Source: Paramicrosporidium saccamoebae KSL3 (Eukaryota > Fungi > Cryptomycota). From it: a stretch of 32,000 nucleotides of DNA. Below the pieces are notes generated by a model. That model worked only from the letters and a program-made list of their open reading frames with translations, was not told the origin of the DNA and did no database searches. Below, piece by piece: positions 12,450-29,182 of the stretch (positions are counted from its first letter, which is position 1; each line of letters opens with the position of its first letter). The stretch spans positions 16,704 to 48,703 of the forward strand of contig MTSL01000184.1 in the NCBI GenBank assembly GCA_002794465.1, read 5' to 3'. The position numbers were made by a program, and so were the translations under genes.

Positions 12450-15400
12450 TCAAACATCAAAGGTGTCTGATTTCTCTTGTAGCGATAATCTCCGCATATC
12501 TGGCACTGCAACAGATGAATGTTCTTCTGACCTCCTCCGTCCCGTGTCCCAATGTTCTGTATCTGTCGCGCCTTGGTCTTGGTTATCTTTTGTGCTTTGG
12601 TCTTTATACTCGGCTGTGCTTTGATCATGGTGGCTTTTCATGTCATCTGCCATTTCATTTGTCGTGTCGCCCTGCGCTCTCTCTTCCACATCACTCCGAG
12701 CCGCCTCTACATCACTCCGAGTCGTCTTTACATCACCCCGAGCCGTCTCTATACCACCCCGAGTCGTCTCTCCCATCGTGACATTCTTTTTCGTTTCAAC
12801 CGGCATCTTGGCCGTGGCCACGTGGATAATCGACTCTTTAAAGTTTGGCATCACCGGATCCAACAGTCTCCACGTCTCATCCCATAGTGTCGATTTTTCA
12901 TCGGGACCCGACGGCCTTAGATAACCGGCTGCAGCCATTACCATCAGCATATTCTTAATGGTCTCAGGAATGGATTCCTTTAACAAATCACCGCGTCCTC
13001 GAAGAAAGGTCAACATGTGTGTCAGGAGAGTCGTCATTAGGGTGGTCGTAGTCATCAGTGTGGTCGTGGTGCCCTCATAATTACAATCAGCCTGTGGCTC
13101 TGCAAAGAGGACAGACAGATTGGACAACAAAATTCGCGTTACCACCGACGTTGATCGTACCTGCAATTCTTCCAACCCCTCCAAGGTGCGCAACTCTGGT
13201 CGTTGTAATTCTTCCAGTAGAGGGAACAAGACCAGTTGGAATTCTTCATACAATGTTTCCACACCTTGCATCCCAAAGTCCACCCCCAGAATAATCCTTT
13301 GCAGCAACGGCAGGGCCTGTTGACGGATCTCCCTAATCGGGTGGTAACATTGCTGTGCCACGGCACAATGCACCGGAATGATATAATCAGGCCACACCCG
13401 ATCCAGGGGGATGGTGTTGGAGACGGCAAGGCGTCTCACGTTGGCCTCTAACAGAGCAAATTTGCCAAGGGCCTGGCCAGCAAGTTCGACAGGCGAGGGC
13501 ACAATGTCTCCAGAAGCCGACAATGGAGAAGAGGGCAGCGGAGCAGCAGTGGAAGAGGCCACAAAACCGCTCAGCAAATCAACATATTCAGAGTAAAATT
13601 CGAGGGGGAAGAGCAAATCATTTTCGCGTACAATGGTGGTCAAAAGACCAAAGGAATAAGGTCCACAGGAACGAGAACGACCAGCCAGAGCGAGGACTGT
13701 AAAGTAATGGGGCCAAATGGCAGTACCGTGGAGAATAGGCGGATCGAGTTCGACAATGCGCAGAACAATTGACAGTGCGGGTTCAGCGAGATGTTGGAAG
13801 GACTCGGGGGGCACATAACACAACAGTTGGAAGAACTGCACCACCTCCTTCTGCATCTCTGGTCGATCGGCAAAACGCAGCGATAGTCGTCCCAACCCGA
13901 GAATAACGTGTTCTCGGATAGCCACGGGAACGCTCAAATCTTTGGCCAACTCGGAGAAGCGCGTAAAAAGGACAGTCCAGAAGACGGACATGCGATCACG
14001 ATTAATCCAGGCGGTGTGTACCACCAGATCAACCAAAAACACCAACGTCTCCACTTCCCAACCCAATGGGCGTGTAACCACTAATTGTTCGGCCATGGCT
14101 GCAATCAACTGCTTCAAGGAGGCCTCTGGTAGGAAACGCGAGTCACGCAAAATCTCCTCCAACTTGCAGGTGCGCACAAACTCAGTGGCGCGATCGCGAG
14201 TCTCCACATCCACCCCCGACGCATCTCCTGGACTTGACACCAAATATTGAGATAGGGCTGAAAAGAGCCCCGACTCGTTACGATCGCTCCGGGGCGAATT
14301 AGCTGTGGACCGAGATATCACCCCTGACAGACCGCCTGCCTCTACTTCAAATGTCGCCAATGTGACAATTGACGATTGTACCAACAACAACACGTGGCGT
14401 ACAAAGGATCGCCAGGCCTCAGCCAGCTGGGAGCCATGGAGACGATACAGATCAAAGTAACATTTAACCAGCGTTCGGAATAGCTCAGATCGTGCCAAAT
14501 ATCGGGGTAACTGATTCCCTGCAGGATTTGATGCAATCTCGGAAAACGCCAAACATTCCACCAACACTGCAGAGAGCTCATCCAAATGCGTCGCATCCAG
14601 GAAGCGGCCCGACAAATTTCCCAGTTCAAATAGCCCCCTCACTGCCAATCGTGATCCCGTATCGCTCTTTGGCGATAAAATCACTAGTAATTAGCATAAA
14701 ACCCATAGTGTTACAGGAGCGGAAACAGGTCAGAAGTGGACCCCACAATAGTTTCATAACATCAGATACATAGCCGTCCAGTAGAAACACGGGCGGTACT
14801 TCGGAAGAGGGATACTTTTTCAATTGCTCATTCCAGGTGTAATGAAAGGCCGTCTCGCCGGCTTGCTCTTCAGGTAGAACAATTTCTTTGCTTTGGATAG
14901 CATGAAAAATGCGGCGCAGGAAAACTTCGTCAAAGCTGGCTCCGTCATTGATACCGCGATTGTTGCGGATAAAGTCGTCCACAGTCATCCGGTGTCGGAC
15001 CTGCTTGTTGTGCTGATCCGTGTTCAACATGATAATGCTATAGGTAAGCACAAAGACTGCGTCTTCACTGCGAAAGATGGCGTCGGTTTGTGCGCGATAG
15101 TACACCTGAGCCAGTGCCTCCATGATGCGACTGATCTGTTGTGACTCCCCAGGTAAACGGAAACTTTCCAACACCACCCGCAATGCCTCGTCAATTTGCA
15201 GTCCCGATAAATTAAAATCGGCCAGAAACTCGTTCAATAAATCCAAATTGGCTGGTTTGGAGACAATTTCACCAATGACGCGCTTGTCCAGTCCAGCAGT
15301 GCGACGCAGATACTGTGCTGTCTCTTTTGGAGTAGCCGGTGTGCTAGTCAGACCATTTTCTTCCAGAAAGGCAAATGCATCTTTTGGGTTCTGATTGAAC

Positions 15401-16944
15401 AGCTCTGCTGAATGACGCATCAGTAGCTTTAACTTGCGGTCGGTGCACAGTCTTTCTGGATCTGGAGTGCATTCTGCCACTGTACCAGCTCCATCTAGGG
15501 CCTGTAGAACCATAATGATAACTTCCAAGGCAAAGAAATAGTCTTGGCCCGCATTCTGTTTCGGTTCCAGTTGCACTGTGGCCACCAAACCAGCGACAAA
15601 TTCCGTCAGCGTATAACCAAACCGTGGATTGCACTCGTATAGGACGTACATGTCTGCCAAAAAGGTCGGATCCAGACAGAAATGCGCCAAAATGTCCAAA
15701 TAGTATTCCCGTGAAACACGTGGCTGCTTCCCAGGAGGCGGCTTATGGATCAGCAATGTCACCAATGTGTAAATGAACAGCTCAGTTGCAGCCAATAAAC
15801 GACGTCGGAACCGTCCAAAGACGGCCAATACTGCCTCGTGCAGAGTGGTCGTCAGCAGAGGCGACTCGTTCAATAGCAGTTGCACCAACACCCTTGTTAG
15901 TCTGGTGGAAATCAAATCCCAAACCAGACCTAAGGACGGCAGTTGCTCCTGATTTTTCTCCACAAAGTCAGTCAGCACTAATAGACAAAGAGACCGCATC
16001 CGATCCGTATTTCGACTCTCTCCGACCTCCAACAGGCGGATCAGATGCGCAAGTAATTCCATCACCAACGCCATCGAATAGGGCGCAACTGTCTCTATCG
16101 GCGTCTCTGCCACCATAATGTCCTGAATTTCCGTGTCACCAAGACTGGATATAGGGCTCTTTGCCGACAAGGGCGGTCGTAATTCCGTTTCGGCCGTCTC
16201 CCCACGCTCATTGGACTTTTCCAATGACTTTTCCTTCTCAAGTTCGGCTTCCAATGCGGCCAATGCGGGTGGTAACGGCTCCGGATCATCAGCTCGTGTC
16301 CCAGGATAGGAAATTTTCAGTGCTCCCATCATCGGCATAGCCATGGTAAAACCTTCATCCCGTACCCTTTCCAGCAAAATCGCACAAAGCTCCATACATG
16401 CCACCTCGGTCTGGCGTCGGAACAGCTCTCCAATCCGCGGCATAACGCACATGGAGAATGCCAATTCTACCACTGCACAAACCTCCGCATCACCCAGCAT
16501 TCGACCCAGCGGGGAGCGCATGGCAAGCAGAACAAAGTCGAGTAATCGTTGCAACGTCGTTTCATCACCACTAAGTTCGCCTACATCCACCCGACACTGC
16601 ACAATCATCATGACCAATCGTCGAAACTCCAAAATTGTCTCCTCCTCTGCAAACAGAGCGAAAAAGTCTCTTCGAAACAGACGCGTCACGCATGACAGAG
16701 CGCCTCCCAATATAAGACAGCTGCACTCGGGGGTGGCAAAGACGGCCCGGAATGGGGCTAAACATGCATTCAGACTGGGCACGTGGGTTGACCGTAGCTG
16801 TCTTCGTAGCGTGCTGAACAGGTGCGTCGTCTCTGCCAATTTGTTGTCATCACTAAAAAACCGCACTCCTGTTCCTTGTCGTTTAATAACCTGCAACATG
16901 TGGAATAGCTCCGGCTGGAGCAGTACTGCAATACTGCGTTCCAT
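12450..16944 (-). CDS. GEA2: Large Sec7-domain ARF guanine-nucleotide exchange factor, GBF1/Gea type (1487 aa, 1 intron)
   Basis: Sec7 domain with glutamic finger FRLPGESQQISR and YSIIMLNTDQHN, upstream DCB/HUS-like helical region, HDS region QCYHPIREIRQQAL. The 31-nt intron 14714-14684 joins the two ORFs in frame. Confidence 0.9.
12688..12771. repeat. Coding minisatellite 4 x 21 nt in the GBF1/GEA C-terminal tail
   Basis: ACATCACTCCGAGCCGCCTCT-like units encoding (T/A)R(G/S)(D/G)(V/I)(E/K)x heptads. Confidence 0.85.
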
Positions 16945-17245
16945 AATAATACGAATAATCTATTAAATTAACTTTTTGAGAGGGGTGAGAATTCTTACGA
17001 CATGAGTGGAATGTTGTTATGAGGATTATTAGGGTTATGAGAGCTATAGAATCTATGAAAATTACGTGAGCTATGTAAAGTCTTGCGAGCTTTTGCTTCC
17101 AATAAAGGACATTACCTCTGAACAGCTCCTCTGATCAACACCTCTAATCAACGGTTAGTGTCCCAATCATAATCTCCATGTTTTAACTACACCCCCCCCG
17201 TGCCATACCATAGTACATCACACTGTATAAAATATAAAAATCTTG

Positions 17246-19783
17246 TTAATCTAGGGCGGTGCCAATAGAATTCCCACATTGCACCAGCGTTTCCAAGTGT
17301 TCCAAACTATTGGAAATCAGATCGGCATCAAAGACCACCGTGTTTGGGGGAAAGAGAACCACAATGGTCGATCCACCAAAGGCAAAATATCCCAACTCGT
17401 CCATGCGGGCAATATGCGCGCCGCCCGTGGCCGTAATGATGATGGAACCAACCATCATGGCGCCAATGGCAACAAATGCGACCTTTCCGTAATGTGTCGT
17501 CTCCAGCAATGCCACCGTACGAGCATTTTCAGTGTAGACATCAATACGCTGACGCACGGCCATGGGATTTACAGTGAAATATGTCCCGGGGATGTGATAG
17601 TACAATGACAATTCTCCATCCACCGGACTATGGAACCGATGATAGTCTTGGGGCGCCAGTCGACACACCATCACTGCCCCTCCCACATAATACTCAGCTA
17701 ATCGCTCGTCTTTCAATAGAGAGGCAATGCTAAAATTGGCGCCTTTAATCCATAATCGCGTGGCCTGATCAATCGTTGCAAAACAGTTCAATCGACAGTC
17801 AGCCGGTGACACACAAATGCGCGGATCTGGTGACGCCACCGTCCTTGCACCGGGCTTCAGTTTCCGGTAAAAGAACTCATTAAAGGTACGGAAAGAGGAA
17901 AGTGGTTGAAGGATCTCGTCCACATTCAACTTGTGATAGCGGATAAATTCGGGAATGTTCTTGACACTGCCTGGATCATCAAATTTACGGCCCTGTTTCA
18001 GCGTCAGCGTCTGGAAGATTTGTCGCACCATGTAAGAGTCAACAGCCCGATTAGACGCTCCGTATTGATGCATCCAACGGATCCCCAGCCGAATGTATGT
18101 CGGCATGCGTTCTTCTAGCAGCTTTCCTGTCCGTCTATCCTGCACCAAAATGTTGCCATTGTTCTTGCCTATCCGGTAGCCCCCAAAGCTCATAAAGGAC
18201 AACAGTTTCATGAACCATTTCCGTGACGCATAATCTTCTGTAATAAAGCCACCCATCACAAAGCGATCCAACTTGCCCGAATCCTTGGCTGCACAAATGG
18301 CCAAATGTGTAATTACATCAATGTCCTCCCGTTGACCCGCCGCAAAGTGTCGGTTGCAGATGGGACACGTCCGCACCAGCACAATATTCTCCTCTTCATG
18401 TTCTGGCAGACGCGCCTTTACTGTCAGCGCCTCCAATGCGGACACTATGTTTCCAATCTCAATTTCGCCCTCCATGTCCACATCCAATTTCTTTATAATC
18501 ACATCCAGCGTGTCTTCAGACAGCGTACTTCCAATCGACTCTAACATTGTCGTCAGCTCAATCCGATTCAACTTTCCATTATCGTCATGGTCATATTGTT
18601 TGGCCAGCACCTCCCAAAAGTTCTTCCGCAGCACGTCATAAGAGATGAAACACGCCTTTACCAGTAGACAACTGTCATTGAATGCATTTGGCGTCGCCAG
18701 TCGGAGCGTCAGGGCCAGCTTTTGAATTTCATTTGGTCGATCCAGCAGCGACGACGCCTTGATGTTTGTGCTGCCCAAACACACGTTATAGCTCAACTTG
18801 TCATAATCATAGACCGAAAAGGTAATGTAATAGGAGGCCTCGGATTCTTTCACGGTAAAGAATAGGCGTTCCTTCCACACGGGATTCACTGTCCGCTTGA
18901 CAACTTTGGTTTTAAACGACTGTTTCCCAAAACTAATGACCACAAAAGGATTGTTTTGGTAATGCACTCGCAGCGTGCGTTTCTGCCTCGGCAGGTTCTG
19001 TGCCGTCACAATTTCCAAGGACACCAAGCCTTTGACGTCCATGGGCGACGGCAGGCGGTCAACAGACACTGTCGAGCCAATGTCTATGTCATCCTCACTC
19101 CTCCCCATGCCCTCCCTCTCCGCCACAATTAGTGTGCTCATCTTGTCTGTTCGCAGCACCGTCACCGGACTGCCTGCCAGCGTAAACTTTTCCAAAAAAT
19201 CCATTCGATGACTTCCCTCTGGCTCTGGTAGCGACCCTAAACATTAATCCAAAAAAGGAAGGTACCCGCACTGGATGAATGATCCAGATTGTAGGTGGGG
19301 GTGGTTTGGACTTCCTCCGAGATGGTGGTGCATAGGGAGGGACAGGGCGACGGTTGGATGGACCGACCCTTTGAATCGAGCTTCTCCACGCGGATGAGCA
19401 GCGTGGCGGCAATAATATCGCCCCCACGGAGCAGCTCAACAATCAGATGATTGTCCATGGTGGACACCAAAAAGGATATGGGGATCTCTGCTTCTCCAAT
19501 AAGAACTCGCTCCTCCGAATTGGGTTTGCTTCGAAACAGCTCCACCAGCAGTAAATGATGACCGTCGCGCACAAAAAACTCGGGCTGGCGGGTAGGCGCT
19601 GTGGTGTGCAACTCTACAAAGGCGCTCTGGTCACGGTCCAAATAGAACCAGATTGCATAACGCGGGTCATCAGTGTTGGGTGTGTAGAGTTCCTGTCGTT
19701 CATTCCGCTCAGTCACTGTCAATGCTACACAATTACCAGCACTGTCAAGACGACCAACCGTCAATGCGCAAAAGAACACCCAT
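17246..19783 (-). CDS. PSD2: Phosphatidylserine decarboxylase proenzyme 2 (C2-C2-EF-hand-PSD; 824 aa, 2 introns)
   Basis: Exons 19783-19759, 19724-19266 and 19236-17246 (introns 34 and 29 nt) splice in frame. C2 domains, EF-hand DHDDNGKLNRIE, FNEFFYRKLK, CRLAPQDYHRFH, autocleavage site FAFGGST. Confidence 0.95.
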
Positions 19784-19847
19784 TAACCGTTTCCTATTGG
19801 CTTGCTCGTTTGCACATTTCCCCTTTGGGTTGCTTATGAGGGTATTA

Positions 19848-19889
19848 AAAGAGCTTTGAAAGAGTTTTGAAAGAATTTGAAGAATTTTT
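19848..19889. repeat. Short degenerate 10-11-nt tandem repeat upstream of PSD2
   Basis: AAAGAGCTTTG AAAGAGTTTTG AAAGAATTTG AAGAATTTTT. Confidence 0.6.
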
Positions 19890-20108
19890 TAGATTTAGTA
19901 AGAATAGCATCTGTGGAAATCATAAATAGGTGATTTACCGTTGGCGATTTGACATTATAAAGTGACTAGATACAAGACAACTTTGAGCAATAGCTCAATC
20001 TACAACCTGTGGATAGCAGCTCAAGGCCAGTAATAGCTTTTCAGCAGGTTGCACACACGACGTAATGTTTATTTCTCAACAAGTCAACAACTTGACAATT
20101 CTACAAAA

Positions 20109-21911
20109 CTATGAAAAATATTCAATCCCAAGATCAGAGACGTATTGCTTCAGCATTGCCATAAACTTATTCTTCCGAGCCGCTCTTACCGCCGCTTCCT
20201 GAAAGTTGGTCTTGTACTCCACGGCTAGGGCAACCACAATCTTTTCCTCCACAACTTCAAACTTGGAGATTTCCACCTTGCCTGTATAGTCTTTGGGCTC
20301 GGATTGCGCAAATTCGGCAAGTCGATCTCGTAGGGTCCAGACATTGTCAATAGAAGTTGTATCAGCCAGGGAAATTTCAATCGTGTCTGACTGAGTGGCA
20401 CTGCGCCGGATGTTGTAAATATTCTTTCCAGAAAGCGCACTGTTGGGAATGTAGACGGCGGTGCCGTCCCAGCGGCGGAAGATGGTGGTAAAGATTTCCA
20501 CCGTCTCCACTGTCAAAAATTCGTCGTCTACAACGACACGGTCGCCCACATCGTAGGCATGCTCGACAAAGACAAAAATCATGGATTCAAAGCAGCTCTT
20601 TGCGGTGCTCTGGAACAGGAACCCAAAGGCCGTCCAGAGCAGTCCATAGATGGCAAAGATGGCAGCTCCACTAATGTTGAAGATGGGCACTGAAAAGGTG
20701 ATTGTGAAAAAGACGGCCACCGCCAACATGATTCCTCCAAGCTTCCTTATAATGTTATTGTTGTTGAGTATGCCCTTGGCCACTGCCTTGCGCTGCTGGT
20801 AGACGTCGAGCACTGCGTCTTTAATCTCTGTGCGGTCAAGATCTCCATGGCCCGCCTTGTCAAACACTCGGAAAGATTCTTCCAAATCTGTCGTCTCAAA
20901 ATAATTGGCAAAATCATCAATGGTCAGATAATCCCGGTTTGTGGGCACCAACTTTTCGTACAGATTGGCAGCCAGGTCTGAGGCGCGCTTCTCGCTGACC
21001 AGTTCACTGAGACGGTCTCGAATGAGATATACCTCGGTTCCCCGCTCAATCTTAATCTTTTTTCCAGGATGGCGAACTGCAGCATGCAGCTTGGTAATGA
21101 CCTGGAAGCGTACATTTAATGCATTAATGCGATCTTCATAAGCCATCCGGTGGAAATTAACCTTGACTAGTTCCACCAGGTAGTTGGCCAATGCATAAAA
21201 GACAGAAAAGATGGCCATCACTAACACGAGACACTCGGCATAGAACCATTCGTTCTGCACTGGTTTAATATCAGCCACAGCCTCGGCAGCGGGCTTCACA
21301 GGCGCCTTACCCAACAGACTACCACCGACAGCATTGATGAAATTGGTGCGATAGAGAAGAGAAGCTCCAGCAACCCCAAGGACAATTAGCCAGATCGCAA
21401 AGGCAAAATAACTCCGGGCCGAGACAAGATGCGCAATGGTGCGTTGTGTAGAGACTGACGGCGTATGGTGTAGCCATTTCATCAACTGCAACATTCTCGC
21501 TGGGAGGGACGAAACTAGCCATTCCACCAACAGAAAGGACATGTATGCAACATAGACAAAAAGACTGATTCGGATAAATTCCATCTGCTCATTGCCCAAT
21601 GGAGAGCCAATTTTGACTTCTGAAAACGTATATTCGGGAAAGCGACCGCACAGCCATATGGCAAATGCCGGTACGAGCATGAGAAATGCCATCACAAACC
21701 CCCAAACGGTCACAGAGACAATGGAGGGCGCATCCTTTGGCGCATTCATCGCCTGCTCAACTTCCATTGTCGAAGATTCATCTGGGCCCTGCATCTCACC
21801 CTCGATCGCACCCTCTGGGAGGGTTTCCTTGGCCTGTACTTGCGGCGTCGTGGCTATCGACGTTGGGGCACGCGTGCCACCTAGTTCGACATCTTGCAGT
21901 CCGTCTGACAT
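20109..21911 (-). CDS. Eukaryotic-type MscS-family mechanosensitive ion channel (Msy1/2-like, EF-hand-like segment), 600 aa
   Basis: Multiple N-terminal TM segments, NFHRMAYEDRI, FDKAGHGDL, FVFVEHAYDVGDRV, IFTTIFRRWDG, IYNIRRS. Confidence 0.9.
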   Translation of the reverse strand: MSDGLQDVELGGTRAPTSIATTPQVQAKETLPEGAIEGEMQGPDESSTMEVEQAMNAPKDAPSIVSVTVWGFVMAFLMLVPAFAIWLCGRFPEYTFSEVKIGSPLGNEQMEFIRISLFVYVAYMSFLLVEWLVSSLPARMLQLMKWLHHTPSVSTQRTIAHLVSARSYFAFAIWLIVLGVAGASLLYRTNFINAVGGSLLGKAPVKPAAEAVADIKPVQNEWFYAECLVLVMAIFSVFYALANYLVELVKVNFHRMAYEDRINALNVRFQVITKLHAAVRHPGKKIKIERGTEVYLIRDRLSELVSEKRASDLAANLYEKLVPTNRDYLTIDDFANYFETTDLEESFRVFDKAGHGDLDRTEIKDAVLDVYQQRKAVAKGILNNNNIIRKLGGIMLAVAVFFTITFSVPIFNISGAAIFAIYGLLWTAFGFLFQSTAKSCFESMIFVFVEHAYDVGDRVVVDDEFLTVETVEIFTTIFRRWDGTAVYIPNSALSGKNIYNIRRSATQSDTIEISLADTTSIDNVWTLRDRLAEFAQSEPKDYTGKVEISKFEVVEEKIVVALAVEYKTNFQEAAVRAARKNKFMAMLKQYVSDLGIEYFS

Positions 21912-26717: not shown

Positions 26718-27533
26718 TTAAGAGGATTCAGACGCCATGGACTTTTTAATCTCTGCAATGGCCTTTGCCGGGTTTAGTCCCTTGGGGCAGGTACGCGTGC
26801 AGTTCATAATTGTGTGACATCGATAGACCGAGAACGGATCTTGTAGTTTAGCCCTTCGCTCTTTACCGTTTTCGTCTCTGCTGTCATTCATCCACCGGTA
26901 CGCCTGCAGCAGCGCTGCTGGTCCTAGATATTTGTCTCCGTTCCACCAGTAGCTTGGACAGCTTGTCGAGCAGCACGCACACAAAATGCATTCGTACAGT
27001 CCGTCCAGTTTTTTCCTGTCGGCGATGGATTGTCGGTTCTCCTGGCCAGCAGGCTGGGATTTCTGTTGTAGCCATGGTTCGATGGCGCGGTACTGGCGGT
27101 AAAAGTTGGTCATGTCTGGAACAAGGTCACGCACTACATGCATATGCGGCAGTGGGTAGATTTTCATCGTTCCGGAAGCGTCGATTCGACAGGTACAGGC
27201 GAGGGTGTTCTGTCCGTTAATGTTCATGGCGCAACTGCCACAGATGCCCTCTCGACAAGAGCGACGGAACGTCAGCGTTGGGTCCTGCTCATTCTTAATC
27301 TTTATCAATGCATCCAAGACCATGGGTCCACACGCATTCAAGTCCACTTCATATGTTTGCTGCCATGGCTTCTTCTCAGGAGTGTCTGGGTTCTACAATT
27401 AGCACCAGCCACTGAGCAGTACCCAGCGGTACACGGAAAATGTCTTGAGACGCGACTGGCGCGGCGCAGGACGCACAGTAGCCGAGTAGCAGCGCGAATG
27501 GAAAAGGTTTGGTCGGAGTAGAGAGACGCGCAT
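26718..27533 (-). CDS. SDH2: Succinate dehydrogenase iron-sulfur subunit, mitochondrial (261 aa, 1 intron)
   Basis: Arg/Ser-rich acid-free presequence [70 protein letters not shown]. 30-nt intron 27422-27393. Confidence 0.97.
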
Positions 27534-27547
27534 TAAAAAGAGAGTGA

Positions 27548-27552
27548 CCAAT
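27548..27552 (+). promoter_or_regulatory. CCAAT box 14 nt upstream of the SDH2 start
   Basis: GACCAATCAG. Respiratory genes are classical HAP2/3/5 targets in fungi. Confidence 0.5.
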
Positions 27553-27599
27553 CAGGAATGATCATCTGCGACATCCGTATATCGCAGAGAGAGGGCCAT

Positions 27600-28421
27600 T
27601 TATTTACAGGCAACGTTGAAAAATGGATGTTGCAGCAACATGTCTACAGTGTAACGCCGGTCTGCATAATAAAAAGACAATAGGCCACGTTTTCCGTAGA
27701 GCATGTCGAACAGGGCTGAAGGAAATGCAAAAGGAGGATCCGATGGAAACTTTATATCCCTGGCATTTCCTTTGGCATCCTCGAGAATTCGATAGGGAAA
27801 ATGTCCATAGTGGAACTCTGCTGGAAGCTTAAAGTAGCGGGCAAAAATGTAAAAGATGGTGACGCCAACAGACCACCAGTCGCTTGCCTCAGTCAAGGGC
27901 ATGCGGACAGAAGGAAGAAGGACTTCGGGTGACATTGTTCTTGGGGTCCCCACGTTAGGTTTTGCACAATGTATGGGACTCGCCAATCCAAGATCAATCA
28001 GCCACACCAGACGTCCCTCGCGAACCACATTTTCCGGCTTGACATCCATATGCAGGAATCCTGCGCAGTGCAGCGCTCCCACCGCCAAGATTAGTTGTCG
28101 ACAAATCTCCACAAGATCCGTATAGGACAGGCCATCCTCCCGCCTATATGAGAGAAGATCACCATCGCACGCCTCCAAATACATAATCTCACGCCGGGCA
28201 GGGAATTGCATTGTTGGCTGCAGAATTTGGGGGCAGTATCGCACGTGAGAGAGGACCCCAATCTCTGTCTCAAAGTCGGAGGGATTATGGAAATGCTTAA
28301 TAACCACTTTGGCCTTTGAGAGTTGCACAAATCGCAAGCTGGACTGACCGCTGTTAATCTTGTTCAGCGTGTCGGCGTGGATCATTAACAAAGTCAGAAA
28401 GACAAGATTTGTGAGGATCAT
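27600..28421 (-). CDS. Divergent Ser/Thr protein kinase with N-terminal signal-peptide-like segment (273 aa)
   Basis: VVIK, alphaC ETE, HMDVKPEN, IDLGLA, GTPRTMSPE, DWWSVG, LLQHPFF. N-terminus MILTNLVFLTLLMIHA/D. Confidence 0.88.
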   Translation of the reverse strand: MILTNLVFLTLLMIHADTLNKINSGQSSLRFVQLSKAKVVIKHFHNPSDFETEIGVLSHVRYCPQILQPTMQFPARREIMYLEACDGDLLSYRREDGLSYTDLVEICRQLILAVGALHCAGFLHMDVKPENVVREGRLVWLIDLGLASPIHCAKPNVGTPRTMSPEVLLPSVRMPLTEASDWWSVGVTIFYIFARYFKLPAEFHYGHFPYRILEDAKGNARDIKFPSDPPFAFPSALFDMLYGKRGLLSFYYADRRYTVDMLLQHPFFNVACK

Positions 28422-28545
28422 GCCGCACTTTCGTGTCTGTCAATTGACCTTTTCAGGACTAGATATCAGATCAGCTAAATAGGGAGATAAAGACAAATTT
28501 ATTTCACATTATGGGGTGTGCGATGTGAGACATGAGATGGTATAT

Positions 28546-28579
28546 CCACGGACCGGGGATTTTAATAAAGGGTCTTTAC
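28546..28579 (+). promoter_or_regulatory. Variant copy of the dispersed 38-nt element upstream of SKP1
   Basis: CCACGGACCGGGGAT(TTTAAT)AAAGGGTCTTTAC, ending 21 nt before ATG 28601. Confidence 0.6.
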
Positions 28580-28600
28580 TACACACATAAATCTACGGCC

Positions 28601-29182
28601 ATGACAGATTCTGCAAAGATCACACTCGTTACAGAAGATGGACAACGCGTCTTATTGGAAAGAAAGAGTGCTCAGCAAATTGGAATTTTGAAAACAATGA
28701 TGAACTCTCCGAACAATATCTTTCCAGTGCCGGCCGTCAAAAGCACCATCCTCACCAAGGTTATCGAATTCTTGGACCAACATGCAGACGACCCCGTTCC
28801 ATTACCCTCCAAGCAACCCATTGCTTCCAGAGACGGCGATGATGATGACGATGAGGGCGACGACGACGCAGACGTCAGCACTCTAACCCTTGACTCGTCC
28901 GTTTCTAGCGACGACGAGTACATCTATGAGGACTACCTCGCCTCTGTAACTCCCTGGGACCAGCGTTTCCTTGACGTCGACCTACCCACATTGATAGAAT
29001 TGACCAAGGCGGCCAACTACCTGAATGTCCCGGTTCTGTTGGACTTGTGTTGTCGGACAATTGCAAGGCAGATGACTGGATTAAAGGCGGAGGAGCTGAG
29101 GAAGAAATTTAATCTGCCAAATGACTTTACGCCCGAAGAAGAGGCCAAGATGGCCGCCGAATTTGCTTGGATTGAAGAATAA
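28601..29182 (+). CDS. SKP1: SCF E3 ligase adaptor Skp1 (193 aa)
   Basis: ITLVTEDG, PVPAVKSTILTKVIEF, WDQRFLDVD, LIELTKAANYLNVPVLLDLCCRTIA, LRKKFNLPNDFTPEEE. Start at ATG 28601. Confidence 0.95.
   Translation: MTDSAKITLVTEDGQRVLLERKSAQQIGILKTMMNSPNNIFPVPAVKSTILTKVIEFLDQHADDPVPLPSKQPIASRDGDDDDDEGDDDADVSTLTLDSSVSSDDEYIYEDYLASVTPWDQRFLDVDLPTLIELTKAANYLNVPVLLDLCCRTIARQMTGLKAEELRKKFNLPNDFTPEEEAKMAAEFAWIEE

Follow-up and report, generated by a model that had tools for sequence, protein, structure and literature searches.

A small gene on the minus strand of the 32,000-nucleotide window analysed here (contig MTSL01000184.1, Paramicrosporidium saccamoebae) encodes a protein kinase domain preceded directly by a hydrophobic leader. 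On balance, the product is best explained as a conserved kinase with a signal peptide, probably active and working in the secretory pathway or at the cell exterior, with a slight leaning towards substrates of the parasite rather than of its host. P. saccamoebae is an obligate intranuclear parasite of amoebae, and its genome has the accession MTSL00000000 (PMC5701793). The assembly GCA_002794465.1, in which the MCM6 protein of the window is on record at contig MTSL01000184.1, is placed as this species among the Cryptomycota (PMC6690862), in agreement with the early-branching fungal parasite that an earlier, sequence-only reading of the stretch had supposed. The gene is real, intact and under purifying selection, beyond what chance would give. 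Its parts are the following.

27600..28421, minus strand: kinase coding sequence, a single exon of 273 codons plus TAA (27602-27600); evidence from the open reading frame (ORF) list, Pfam, AlphaFold2 and the ratio of nonsynonymous to synonymous substitution rates (dN/dS)

28374..28421, minus strand: leader, codons 1-16, uncharged; position -3 is Ile and position -1 is Ala; evidence from sequence, hydropathy, the AlphaFold2 model and the related locus L001

27603..28373, minus strand: bare kinase domain, codons 17-273, from beta1 to the last helix; evidence from the secondary structure of the model, the invariant residues and Foldseek

The kinase domain is recognized by the Pfam Pkinase profile (PF00069) with E = 3.4e-23 and 82.8 bits, the curated cut-off being 31.7, residues 45-268 of the protein corresponding to positions 33-263 of the 263 in the profile. 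The catalytic set consists of Lys42 of beta3 in VVIK, Glu53 of alphaC, the HMDVKPEN loop (His124, Asp126, Lys128, and Asn131), and the magnesium site Asp143-Leu-Gly145. The catalytic loop reads HMD, and the enzyme is accordingly a non-RD kinase (no Arg-Asp pair), while Ser164-Pro-Glu166 (SPE) is found where APE is expected. In an alignment of 29 divergent family members, K42, E53, H124, D126, K128, N131, D143, and G145 are invariant. All the motifs named in the sequence-only reading were found, and its statement that the catalytic residues are intact holds in the family alignments too. The same reading had described an eroded glycine loop. Residues 22-28 read INSGQSS, so that the three glycine positions of the canonical GxGxxG are occupied by I, S, and S, and the description is apt when the loop is judged against the distant family members, which retain GxGGQG. 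The loop has its normal length and keeps the invariant Gly-Gln, and it is read as a variant inside the kinase superfamily, membership of which still holds. To judge from these residues, the kinase is probably catalytically active.

The structural model points to the same architecture. An AlphaFold2 model built with 13 relatives as input reached a predicted local distance difference test (pLDDT) score of 90.2 and a predicted template modelling (pTM) score of 0.88, and it shows a bilobal kinase fold with beta1 (17-23), beta2 (27-34), beta3 (37-44), alphaC (47-59), beta4, and beta5 in the N-lobe, followed by a C-lobe. Foldseek returned at least 500 kinase matches for it, with template modelling (TM) scores of about 0.65-0.74. 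Residues 1-15 appear in the model as a helix detached from the fold, with pLDDT below 50. Downstream of the leader the window protein contains no linker, transmembrane segment, or regulatory region. The ORF, the sequence, and the model therefore agree with what had been noticed at first, namely, a 16-residue hydrophobic leader with Ala at -1 fused directly to a bare kinase.

The kinase has no close relative among the enzymes with solved structures. Searches of these with the single protein and with a family profile gave a flat list of 75-81 bits, led by the CAMK group (MLCK4, CaMK1, DAPK/DRAK, and MELK) together with TTK and ROCK, and in the fold search GRK2, CK2, ULK1, MKK5, and PHKG2 came up with TM scores of about 0.7 and identities of about 20 %. 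A specific kinship with any one solved kinase was considered and rejected, as the single-sequence, profile, and fold searches all produced flat, generic lists. The protein is accordingly classed as an orphan Ser/Thr kinase whose catalytic loop and activation segment are CAMK/AGC-like. Given the flat matches and the gap in score that sets its family apart (see below), it is not regarded as an orthologue of a conserved cytosolic kinase, an identity that the sequence-only reading had named as fatal to its proposal.

The leader is a hydrophobic stretch of 16 residues ending in Ala16, after which comes Asp17; residues 2-14 are hydrophobic and no charged residue is present. Its best 9-residue segment has a mean Kyte-Doolittle hydropathy of 3.10 and lies within an uncharged span of 16 residues. 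Cleavage is likely to occur between Ala16 and Asp17. Across the family, a leader was counted when at least one 9-residue segment with a mean Kyte-Doolittle value of at least 2.0 was found in the first 35 residues (the first 60 for three long calls). By this measure a hydrophobic leader is carried by 24 of the 37 family members. In two control sets drawn from the same databases, 120 MCM6 proteins and 122 other kinases, the share is 1 % and 14 %, respectively. Of the 13 members that lack such a segment, most are truncated at or close to the Gly-Gln motif, and a few are truly leaderless. The leaders cannot be aligned with each other in sequence; that of L001 is the same as in the window, and the other orthologues carry leaders of different sequence. 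Their hydrophobic cores mostly measure 10-16 residues and their uncharged spans mostly 10-20, small residues are common before the cut site (A, G, S, or C at -1 and A, V, or C at -3), and the n-region of most orthologues contains Arg.

A pair of cysteines provides a further indication of the compartment. One lies just after the leader and the other at the position of window residue 71 (beta4), and they are paired in 14 of the 16 members that have the first, whereas both are jointly absent from the window protein and its nearest orthologues. Such co-variation is to be expected of a disulfide and speaks for an oxidizing compartment for the family; it also suggests that the pair forms a disulfide which has been lost in the window protein. 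No orthologue carries an endoplasmic reticulum (ER) retention tail. Taken as a whole, a cleaved secretory signal is the best reading of the leader, and an uncleaved anchor is possible for some members.

Translation of the gene can start no earlier than the ATG at 28421. An in-frame TGA (28442-28440) lies 18 nucleotides upstream of it. In L001, whose product is 88 % identical to the window kinase, an indel of 1 nucleotide occurs 7 nucleotides upstream of the ATG while the leader codons stay in frame, so that the stretch upstream is not coding in the kinase frame. That the leader is buried by an exon further upstream is for practical purposes excluded by the TGA, the indel, and the spacer of 179 nucleotides to the Skp1 gene; these observations bear out the earlier claim that the gene is intronless and that no upstream ATG or exon hides the leader. 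The sole real alternative start is Met13, in the same frame and 36 nucleotides downstream of the first ATG. The orthologues P0004, P0005, and P0006 possess no second Met ahead of the beta3 Lys, and their leaders must be translated because skipping them would remove the N-lobe. Leaders are likewise present in L001 and L006 when these are read from the first ATG.

The gene is conserved in position. A word-based search yielded 16 relatives, and the order Skp1 - kinase - SDHB, with Skp1 divergent, was found in seven other uncultured lineages (loci L001/L002, L003/L004, L005, L006, L007, L008/L009, and L011), which makes eight including P. saccamoebae. The positional orthologues are 44-88 % identical to the window kinase. 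Ima1, MCM6, an MscS-like channel, and phosphatidylserine decarboxylase on one side and CHD5 and HLH on the other recur in the orthologous loci, and the kinase is single-copy at the locus.

Beyond the locus, a profile search of a 1.84-billion-protein library, made with no length filter, returned single-domain proteins 227-378 residues long, in about 28 clusters, that scored from 405 down to about 136 bits. The remaining matches were generic or multi-kinase proteins, of which the giant multi-kinase ones cover part of the profile only, and the search gave no fusion to a regulatory domain in the core family. In the profile word search the family scored at least 189 bits, the next protein 124, and the first named generic kinase 107. 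On these scores the approximately 28 clusters of small kinases are taken as a delimited family. It includes a leaderless subclade with proteins of 560-580 residues. A rough neighbour-joining tree groups the syntenic orthologues into a single clade and has leader-bearing members spread throughout. The only named organism among the 20 clusters checked is the metchnikovellid microsporidian Amphiamblys sp. WSBS2006, with the member P0179 (OIR57463.1). In this record an internal methionine, Met11, precedes the hydrophobic segment, and the annotated start may be too far upstream.

A distant relative stems from a marine biofilm metagenome, in which the contig L010 (9126-10843) carries two family genes of 287 and 280 residues in tandem, 12 nucleotides apart, both leader-bearing and surrounded by other genes than in the window; no further sign of duplication was seen. 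The sequence-only reading had suggested a search for a paralogue family with signal peptides: a delimited family with leaders in 24 of 37 members exists, the gene stands alone at its locus, and the one tandem pair seen belongs to the distant relative L010.

Purifying selection on the gene is about as strong as on Skp1. In one pairwise comparison against L001, dN/dS was 0.078 for the kinase, 0.061 for Skp1, and 0.014 for SDHB. Identity of the kinase to three more distant genomes is 48-50 %, like that of Ima1 (45-49 %) and of the MscS-like channel (50 %), and in the same three genomes Skp1 (61-77 %), MCM6 (78 %), and SDHB (87-88 %) are more conserved. Arms-race effectors would be recognized by lineage-specific expansion, loss of synteny, and elevated dN/dS, whereas here one copy, eight syntenic lineages, and a dN/dS of 0.078 were found. 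In its evolution the gene behaves as a core gene, which speaks against an effector like ROP or FIKK that is engaged in an arms race.

The following sequence of events would account for these features. The leader would direct the nascent chain into the ER and be cut off between Ala16 and Asp17, and the bare kinase of about 257 residues would travel onward through the secretory pathway to the lumen, the parasite surface, or the exterior. Because the kinase is non-RD, it would presumably be independent of activation-loop phosphorylation. It could then phosphorylate Ser/Thr residues in the lumen, at the surface, or outside the cell. Its substrates would, slightly more likely than not, be conserved proteins of the parasite itself, such as secretory cargo or surface, spore, or polar-filament proteins, in the manner of Toxoplasma WNG1 and animal Fam20C. 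The leaning towards the parasite's own substrates, rather than towards an arms-race effector, follows from the gene being a slowly changing, single-copy, syntenic core gene.

Several points weigh against a secreted, active kinase. The leader call depends on a home-made hydropathy measure and on inspection. The window protein is devoid of a positively charged n-region and has Ile at -3, and the cysteine pair that speaks for an oxidizing compartment is absent from this very protein. In a few relatives the uncharged span is 20-26 residues long and might act as a membrane anchor, and the family includes the leaderless members P0165, P0176, P0198, P0199, P0202, and P0288. The public gene model begins at Met13, and transcription might be initiated within the 36 nucleotides from the first Met codon to the second. 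Finally, all three canonical glycines of the ATP loop are replaced (I, S, and S) in the window protein, and for this reason its activity is not certain.

The sequence-only reading had favoured a host-targeted effector. In P. saccamoebae such a kinase would be released from the intranuclear parasite into the nucleus or cytoplasm of the amoeba and would rewire host signalling like the ROP and FIKK kinases. This is unlikely in the light of the present data. The obligate intranuclear life of P. saccamoebae (PMC5701793) speaks for it, together with the leader, the non-RD loop, and the lack of any retention signal or membrane segment, and a soluble secreted protein of such a parasite may well reach the host nucleoplasm. 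Other intracellular eukaryotic parasites secrete kinases, as exemplified by Plasmodiophora brassicae (PMC12503489), and the kinase diverges faster (48-50 % identity) than MCM6, Skp1, and SDHB (61-88 %) over the same genome pairs. That divergence, however, only equals the divergence of two ordinary membrane proteins encoded at the locus, Ima1 and the MscS-like channel. The gene is present as a single copy at the locus, with a positional orthologue in eight lineages, and its dN/dS lies near that of Skp1. The lineages of the family must have very different hosts, as they include a marine biofilm metagenome and a gregarine hyperparasite. Homology to ROP, FIKK, and WNG is limited to the shared kinase fold, and no host-targeting motif was seen in the window protein. 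Secretion towards the host is possible, as an idea drawn from lifestyle only. A related and equally doubtful proposal would retain the conservation: the protein would be a founding member of an ancient secreted kinase family of the Rozellomycota-Microsporidia lineage, released into the host (for P. saccamoebae, the amoeba nucleus), where it would phosphorylate conserved host proteins.

Less probable still is an uncleaved anchor that would tether the kinase to the membrane of the ER, Golgi, or vacuole or to the outer mitochondrial membrane, with the catalytic domain in the parasite cytosol. The long uncharged N-terminal spans mentioned above (20-26 residues, in P0009, P0151, P0155, and P0210) are compatible with it, as is the missing cysteine pair of the window protein, and in the absence of a positive n-region the orientation of the window leader is not set by charge. 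Conversely, the hydrophobic core of most members, at 10-16 residues, is short for a membrane span, with small residues occupying the -1 and -3 positions after it, and the Arg in the n-region of most orthologues would place the kinase in the lumen by the positive-inside rule. In the window protein beta1 begins one residue past the leader, which leaves no spacer between the membrane and the fold, and the co-varying cysteines of the wider family point to an oxidizing compartment.

The surroundings of the gene comprise the following features.

28422..28600, no strand: divergent intergenic region of 179 nucleotides between the kinase ATG and the Skp1 ATG; alignment against L001

28601..29182, plus strand: Skp1, the divergently transcribed neighbour; Pfam Skp1 and Skp1_POZ families and synteny

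26718..27533, minus strand: SDHB, the iron-sulfur subunit of succinate dehydrogenase, the other neighbour; Pfam Fer2_3 and Fer4 families

27533-27423, minus strand: SDHB exon 1, with a mitochondrial-type presequence, ending in the conserved YRW; separate exon translation

27422-27393, minus strand: SDHB intron of 30 nucleotides, GT..AG, with a CTAAT-like element near the acceptor; sequence

27392-26718, minus strand: SDHB exon 2; separate exon translation

The public model that lies over the kinase on MTSL01000184.1 runs from window position 28385 to 26718 (L012 14703-16370) and encodes 470 residues that match both the kinase and the SDHB families. It can be decomposed into residues 13-258 of the kinase (28385-27648), a GT..AG "intron" of 255 nucleotides (27647-27393), and SDHB exon 2 (27392-26718), and it omits the leader, the final 15 residues of the kinase, and the first exon of SDHB. 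The model looks like a merge of two adjacent genes, probably caused by their spacing of 66 nucleotides. An exact look-up of the 273-residue product found no record, since it is the 470-residue merged product that was deposited. The suspicion that the kinase was undescribed is consistent with this state of the annotation, in which the public model lacks the leader and is joined to SDHB, and with a literature search, in which no paper linking a signal-peptide kinase to Paramicrosporidium was found.

The weakest alternative, in which translation would begin at Met13 and leave a plain cytosolic mini-kinase or, in its extreme form, a real kinase-SDHB fusion, is very improbable: it can call on the public model, which begins at 28385 (Met13), on the like JGI call (P0001) for the 88 % identical orthologue, on a Met near position 13-14 in several orthologues, and on the leaderless family members, but the first ATG lies 36 nucleotides upstream in frame and is kept with its leader in L001, P0004, P0005, and P0006 offer no second Met before the kinase core, leaders are over-represented across the family, and a fusion would cost the kinase domain its end and SDHB its presequence exon and would join a secretory to a mitochondrial protein, whereas both genes are complete alone and are listed separately at other loci.

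A second public model, at window positions 12450-21911 (L012 435-9896), has 2,855 residues and spans four long ORFs with unrelated family matches, namely, a GBF1-like Sec7 protein (two ORFs), a C2/EF-hand phosphatidylserine decarboxylase, and the MscS-like channel. It is probably over-merged too, because the related loci list its genes separately. The window contains few introns. A Blastocystis origin, suggested by the length of exactly 30 nucleotides of the SDHB intron, was rejected on account of this scarcity, because the polyadenylation motif of Blastocystis (PMC5608401) shows no enrichment (2 found, 1.8 expected), and because the contig belongs to P. saccamoebae. The GBF1-like gene is made up of two minus-strand ORFs (12450-14684 and 14626-16944) which overlap by 59 nucleotides (14626-14684) in different frames, and a short intron or a frameshift is therefore needed at that point.

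The gene pairs on either side of the kinase are tightly packed. The SDHB ATG lies 66 nucleotides past the kinase stop (gap 27534-27599), and the 3' end of the kinase gene and the SDHB promoter must therefore overlap or abut. On the other side, the Skp1 ORF is listed from 28532, and its real ATG is probably downstream at 28601; the protein has an acidic insertion (an Asp/Glu run, then a Ser-rich stretch) between its two conserved domains. About 90 nucleotides beside the kinase ATG (about 28422-28513) are approximately 92 % identical to L001, as compared to a synonymous divergence (dS) of 0.7-0.9 in the flanking genes, and the conservation of this block is not visible in the more distant loci. 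It may represent a constrained core promoter or the 5' untranslated region of the divergent Skp1/kinase pair. A small RNA was considered for the block and rejected, given that the Rfam match resembling a C/D-box small nucleolar RNA is insignificant (16 bits against a threshold of 90) and the putative D box is absent in L001.

Apicomplexans, plasmodiophorids, and animals are all known to possess secreted or luminal protein kinases. A literature search found none described for Microsporidia, Rozella/Rozellomycota, or Paramicrosporidium, in which the known secreted kinases are sugar kinases. The leader-bearing kinase family of the Rozellomycota-Microsporidia lineage is new and is unannotated in the reference genome. 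If the explanation given here is true, a conserved leader-bearing kinase would be no younger than the ancestor shared by Paramicrosporidium-like lineages and metchnikovellids, and phosphorylation outside the parasite cytosol, be it in the secretory lumen, in the spore/polar-filament apparatus, or in the host, would be added to the biology of the group. The kinase is a defined single-copy candidate for proteomic and localization data. Were it released into the host, it would be the first host-directed kinase effector from fungus-related intracellular parasites, hidden by a merged gene model. Secretome counts based on the public models of this compact genome will miss such proteins, because these models merge neighbours and skip first ATGs.

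Comparison with known systems places the protein among kinases that it resembles in design. In CAMK kinases, as in the window protein, the catalytic loop reads D-[LV]-K-P-E-N and the activation segment G-T-x-x-x-x-[AS]-P-E, but the window protein is only about 20-25 % identical to them, lacks a calmodulin-binding or regulatory tail, is non-RD, and has a leader in place of the cytosolic N-terminus. The ROP and FIKK enzymes are likewise divergent kinases of intracellular parasites with secretion signals. They are, however, multi-copy and fast-evolving, with N-terminal targeting or extension regions and, in FIKK, the name-giving motif, whereas the window protein has no N-terminal extension, reads VVIK at beta3, and contains no FIKK motif. 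No member of the ROP, FIKK, or WNG groups was found in the best 60 sequence matches of the protein or the profile or in the best 50 fold matches, and Fam20, VLK, and POMK did not appear among the best matches listed in either the sequence or the fold searches. The likeness to ROP, FIKK, WNG, Fam20, and VLK is thus one of design and not of descent, and the proposed analogy to the ROP and FIKK effectors is not upheld for a single-copy, syntenic gene with a dN/dS like that of Skp1.

Signal peptides on enzymes of intracellular parasites are found in two further cases. Microsporidian secreted hexokinases carry a signal peptide on a housekeeping-type enzyme and have been proposed to be released towards the host (PMC4654818; PMC3514677). 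They belong to the same broad parasite lineage, but they are sugar kinases and paralogues of a cytosolic enzyme, whereas no named organism offers a cytosolic enzyme close to the window kinase. In Plasmodiophora brassicae, a 20-member kinase cluster in the predicted secretome (PMC12503489) also represents signal-peptide kinases in an intracellular eukaryotic parasite; in that case the cluster is a one-species expansion in an unrelated lineage, whereas here one conserved gene is present per locus.

Two systems come closer to the proposed function. Toxoplasma WNG1 is a secreted kinase without a normal glycine loop that acts, outside the parasite cell, on the secreted proteins of the parasite itself (PMC6442604). 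The WNG kinases (WNG1/ROP35 group) have in common with the window protein an N-terminal secretory signal, a degenerate or missing glycine loop, retained catalytic residues, and conservation in place of expansion (PMC6442604). They differ from it in that the loop of the window protein is not deleted, its length and the conserved Gly-Gln being kept, in that no N-terminal extension is present, and in that the lineage is Holomycota and not Apicomplexa. Fam20C, VLK/PKDCC, and POMK are kinases of the secretory lumen or the cell exterior. They are atypical in structure or much larger, and unrelated in sequence, whereas the window protein is a canonical minimal domain; their action on secretory cargo nevertheless provides the functional model favoured for the kinase of P. 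saccamoebae.

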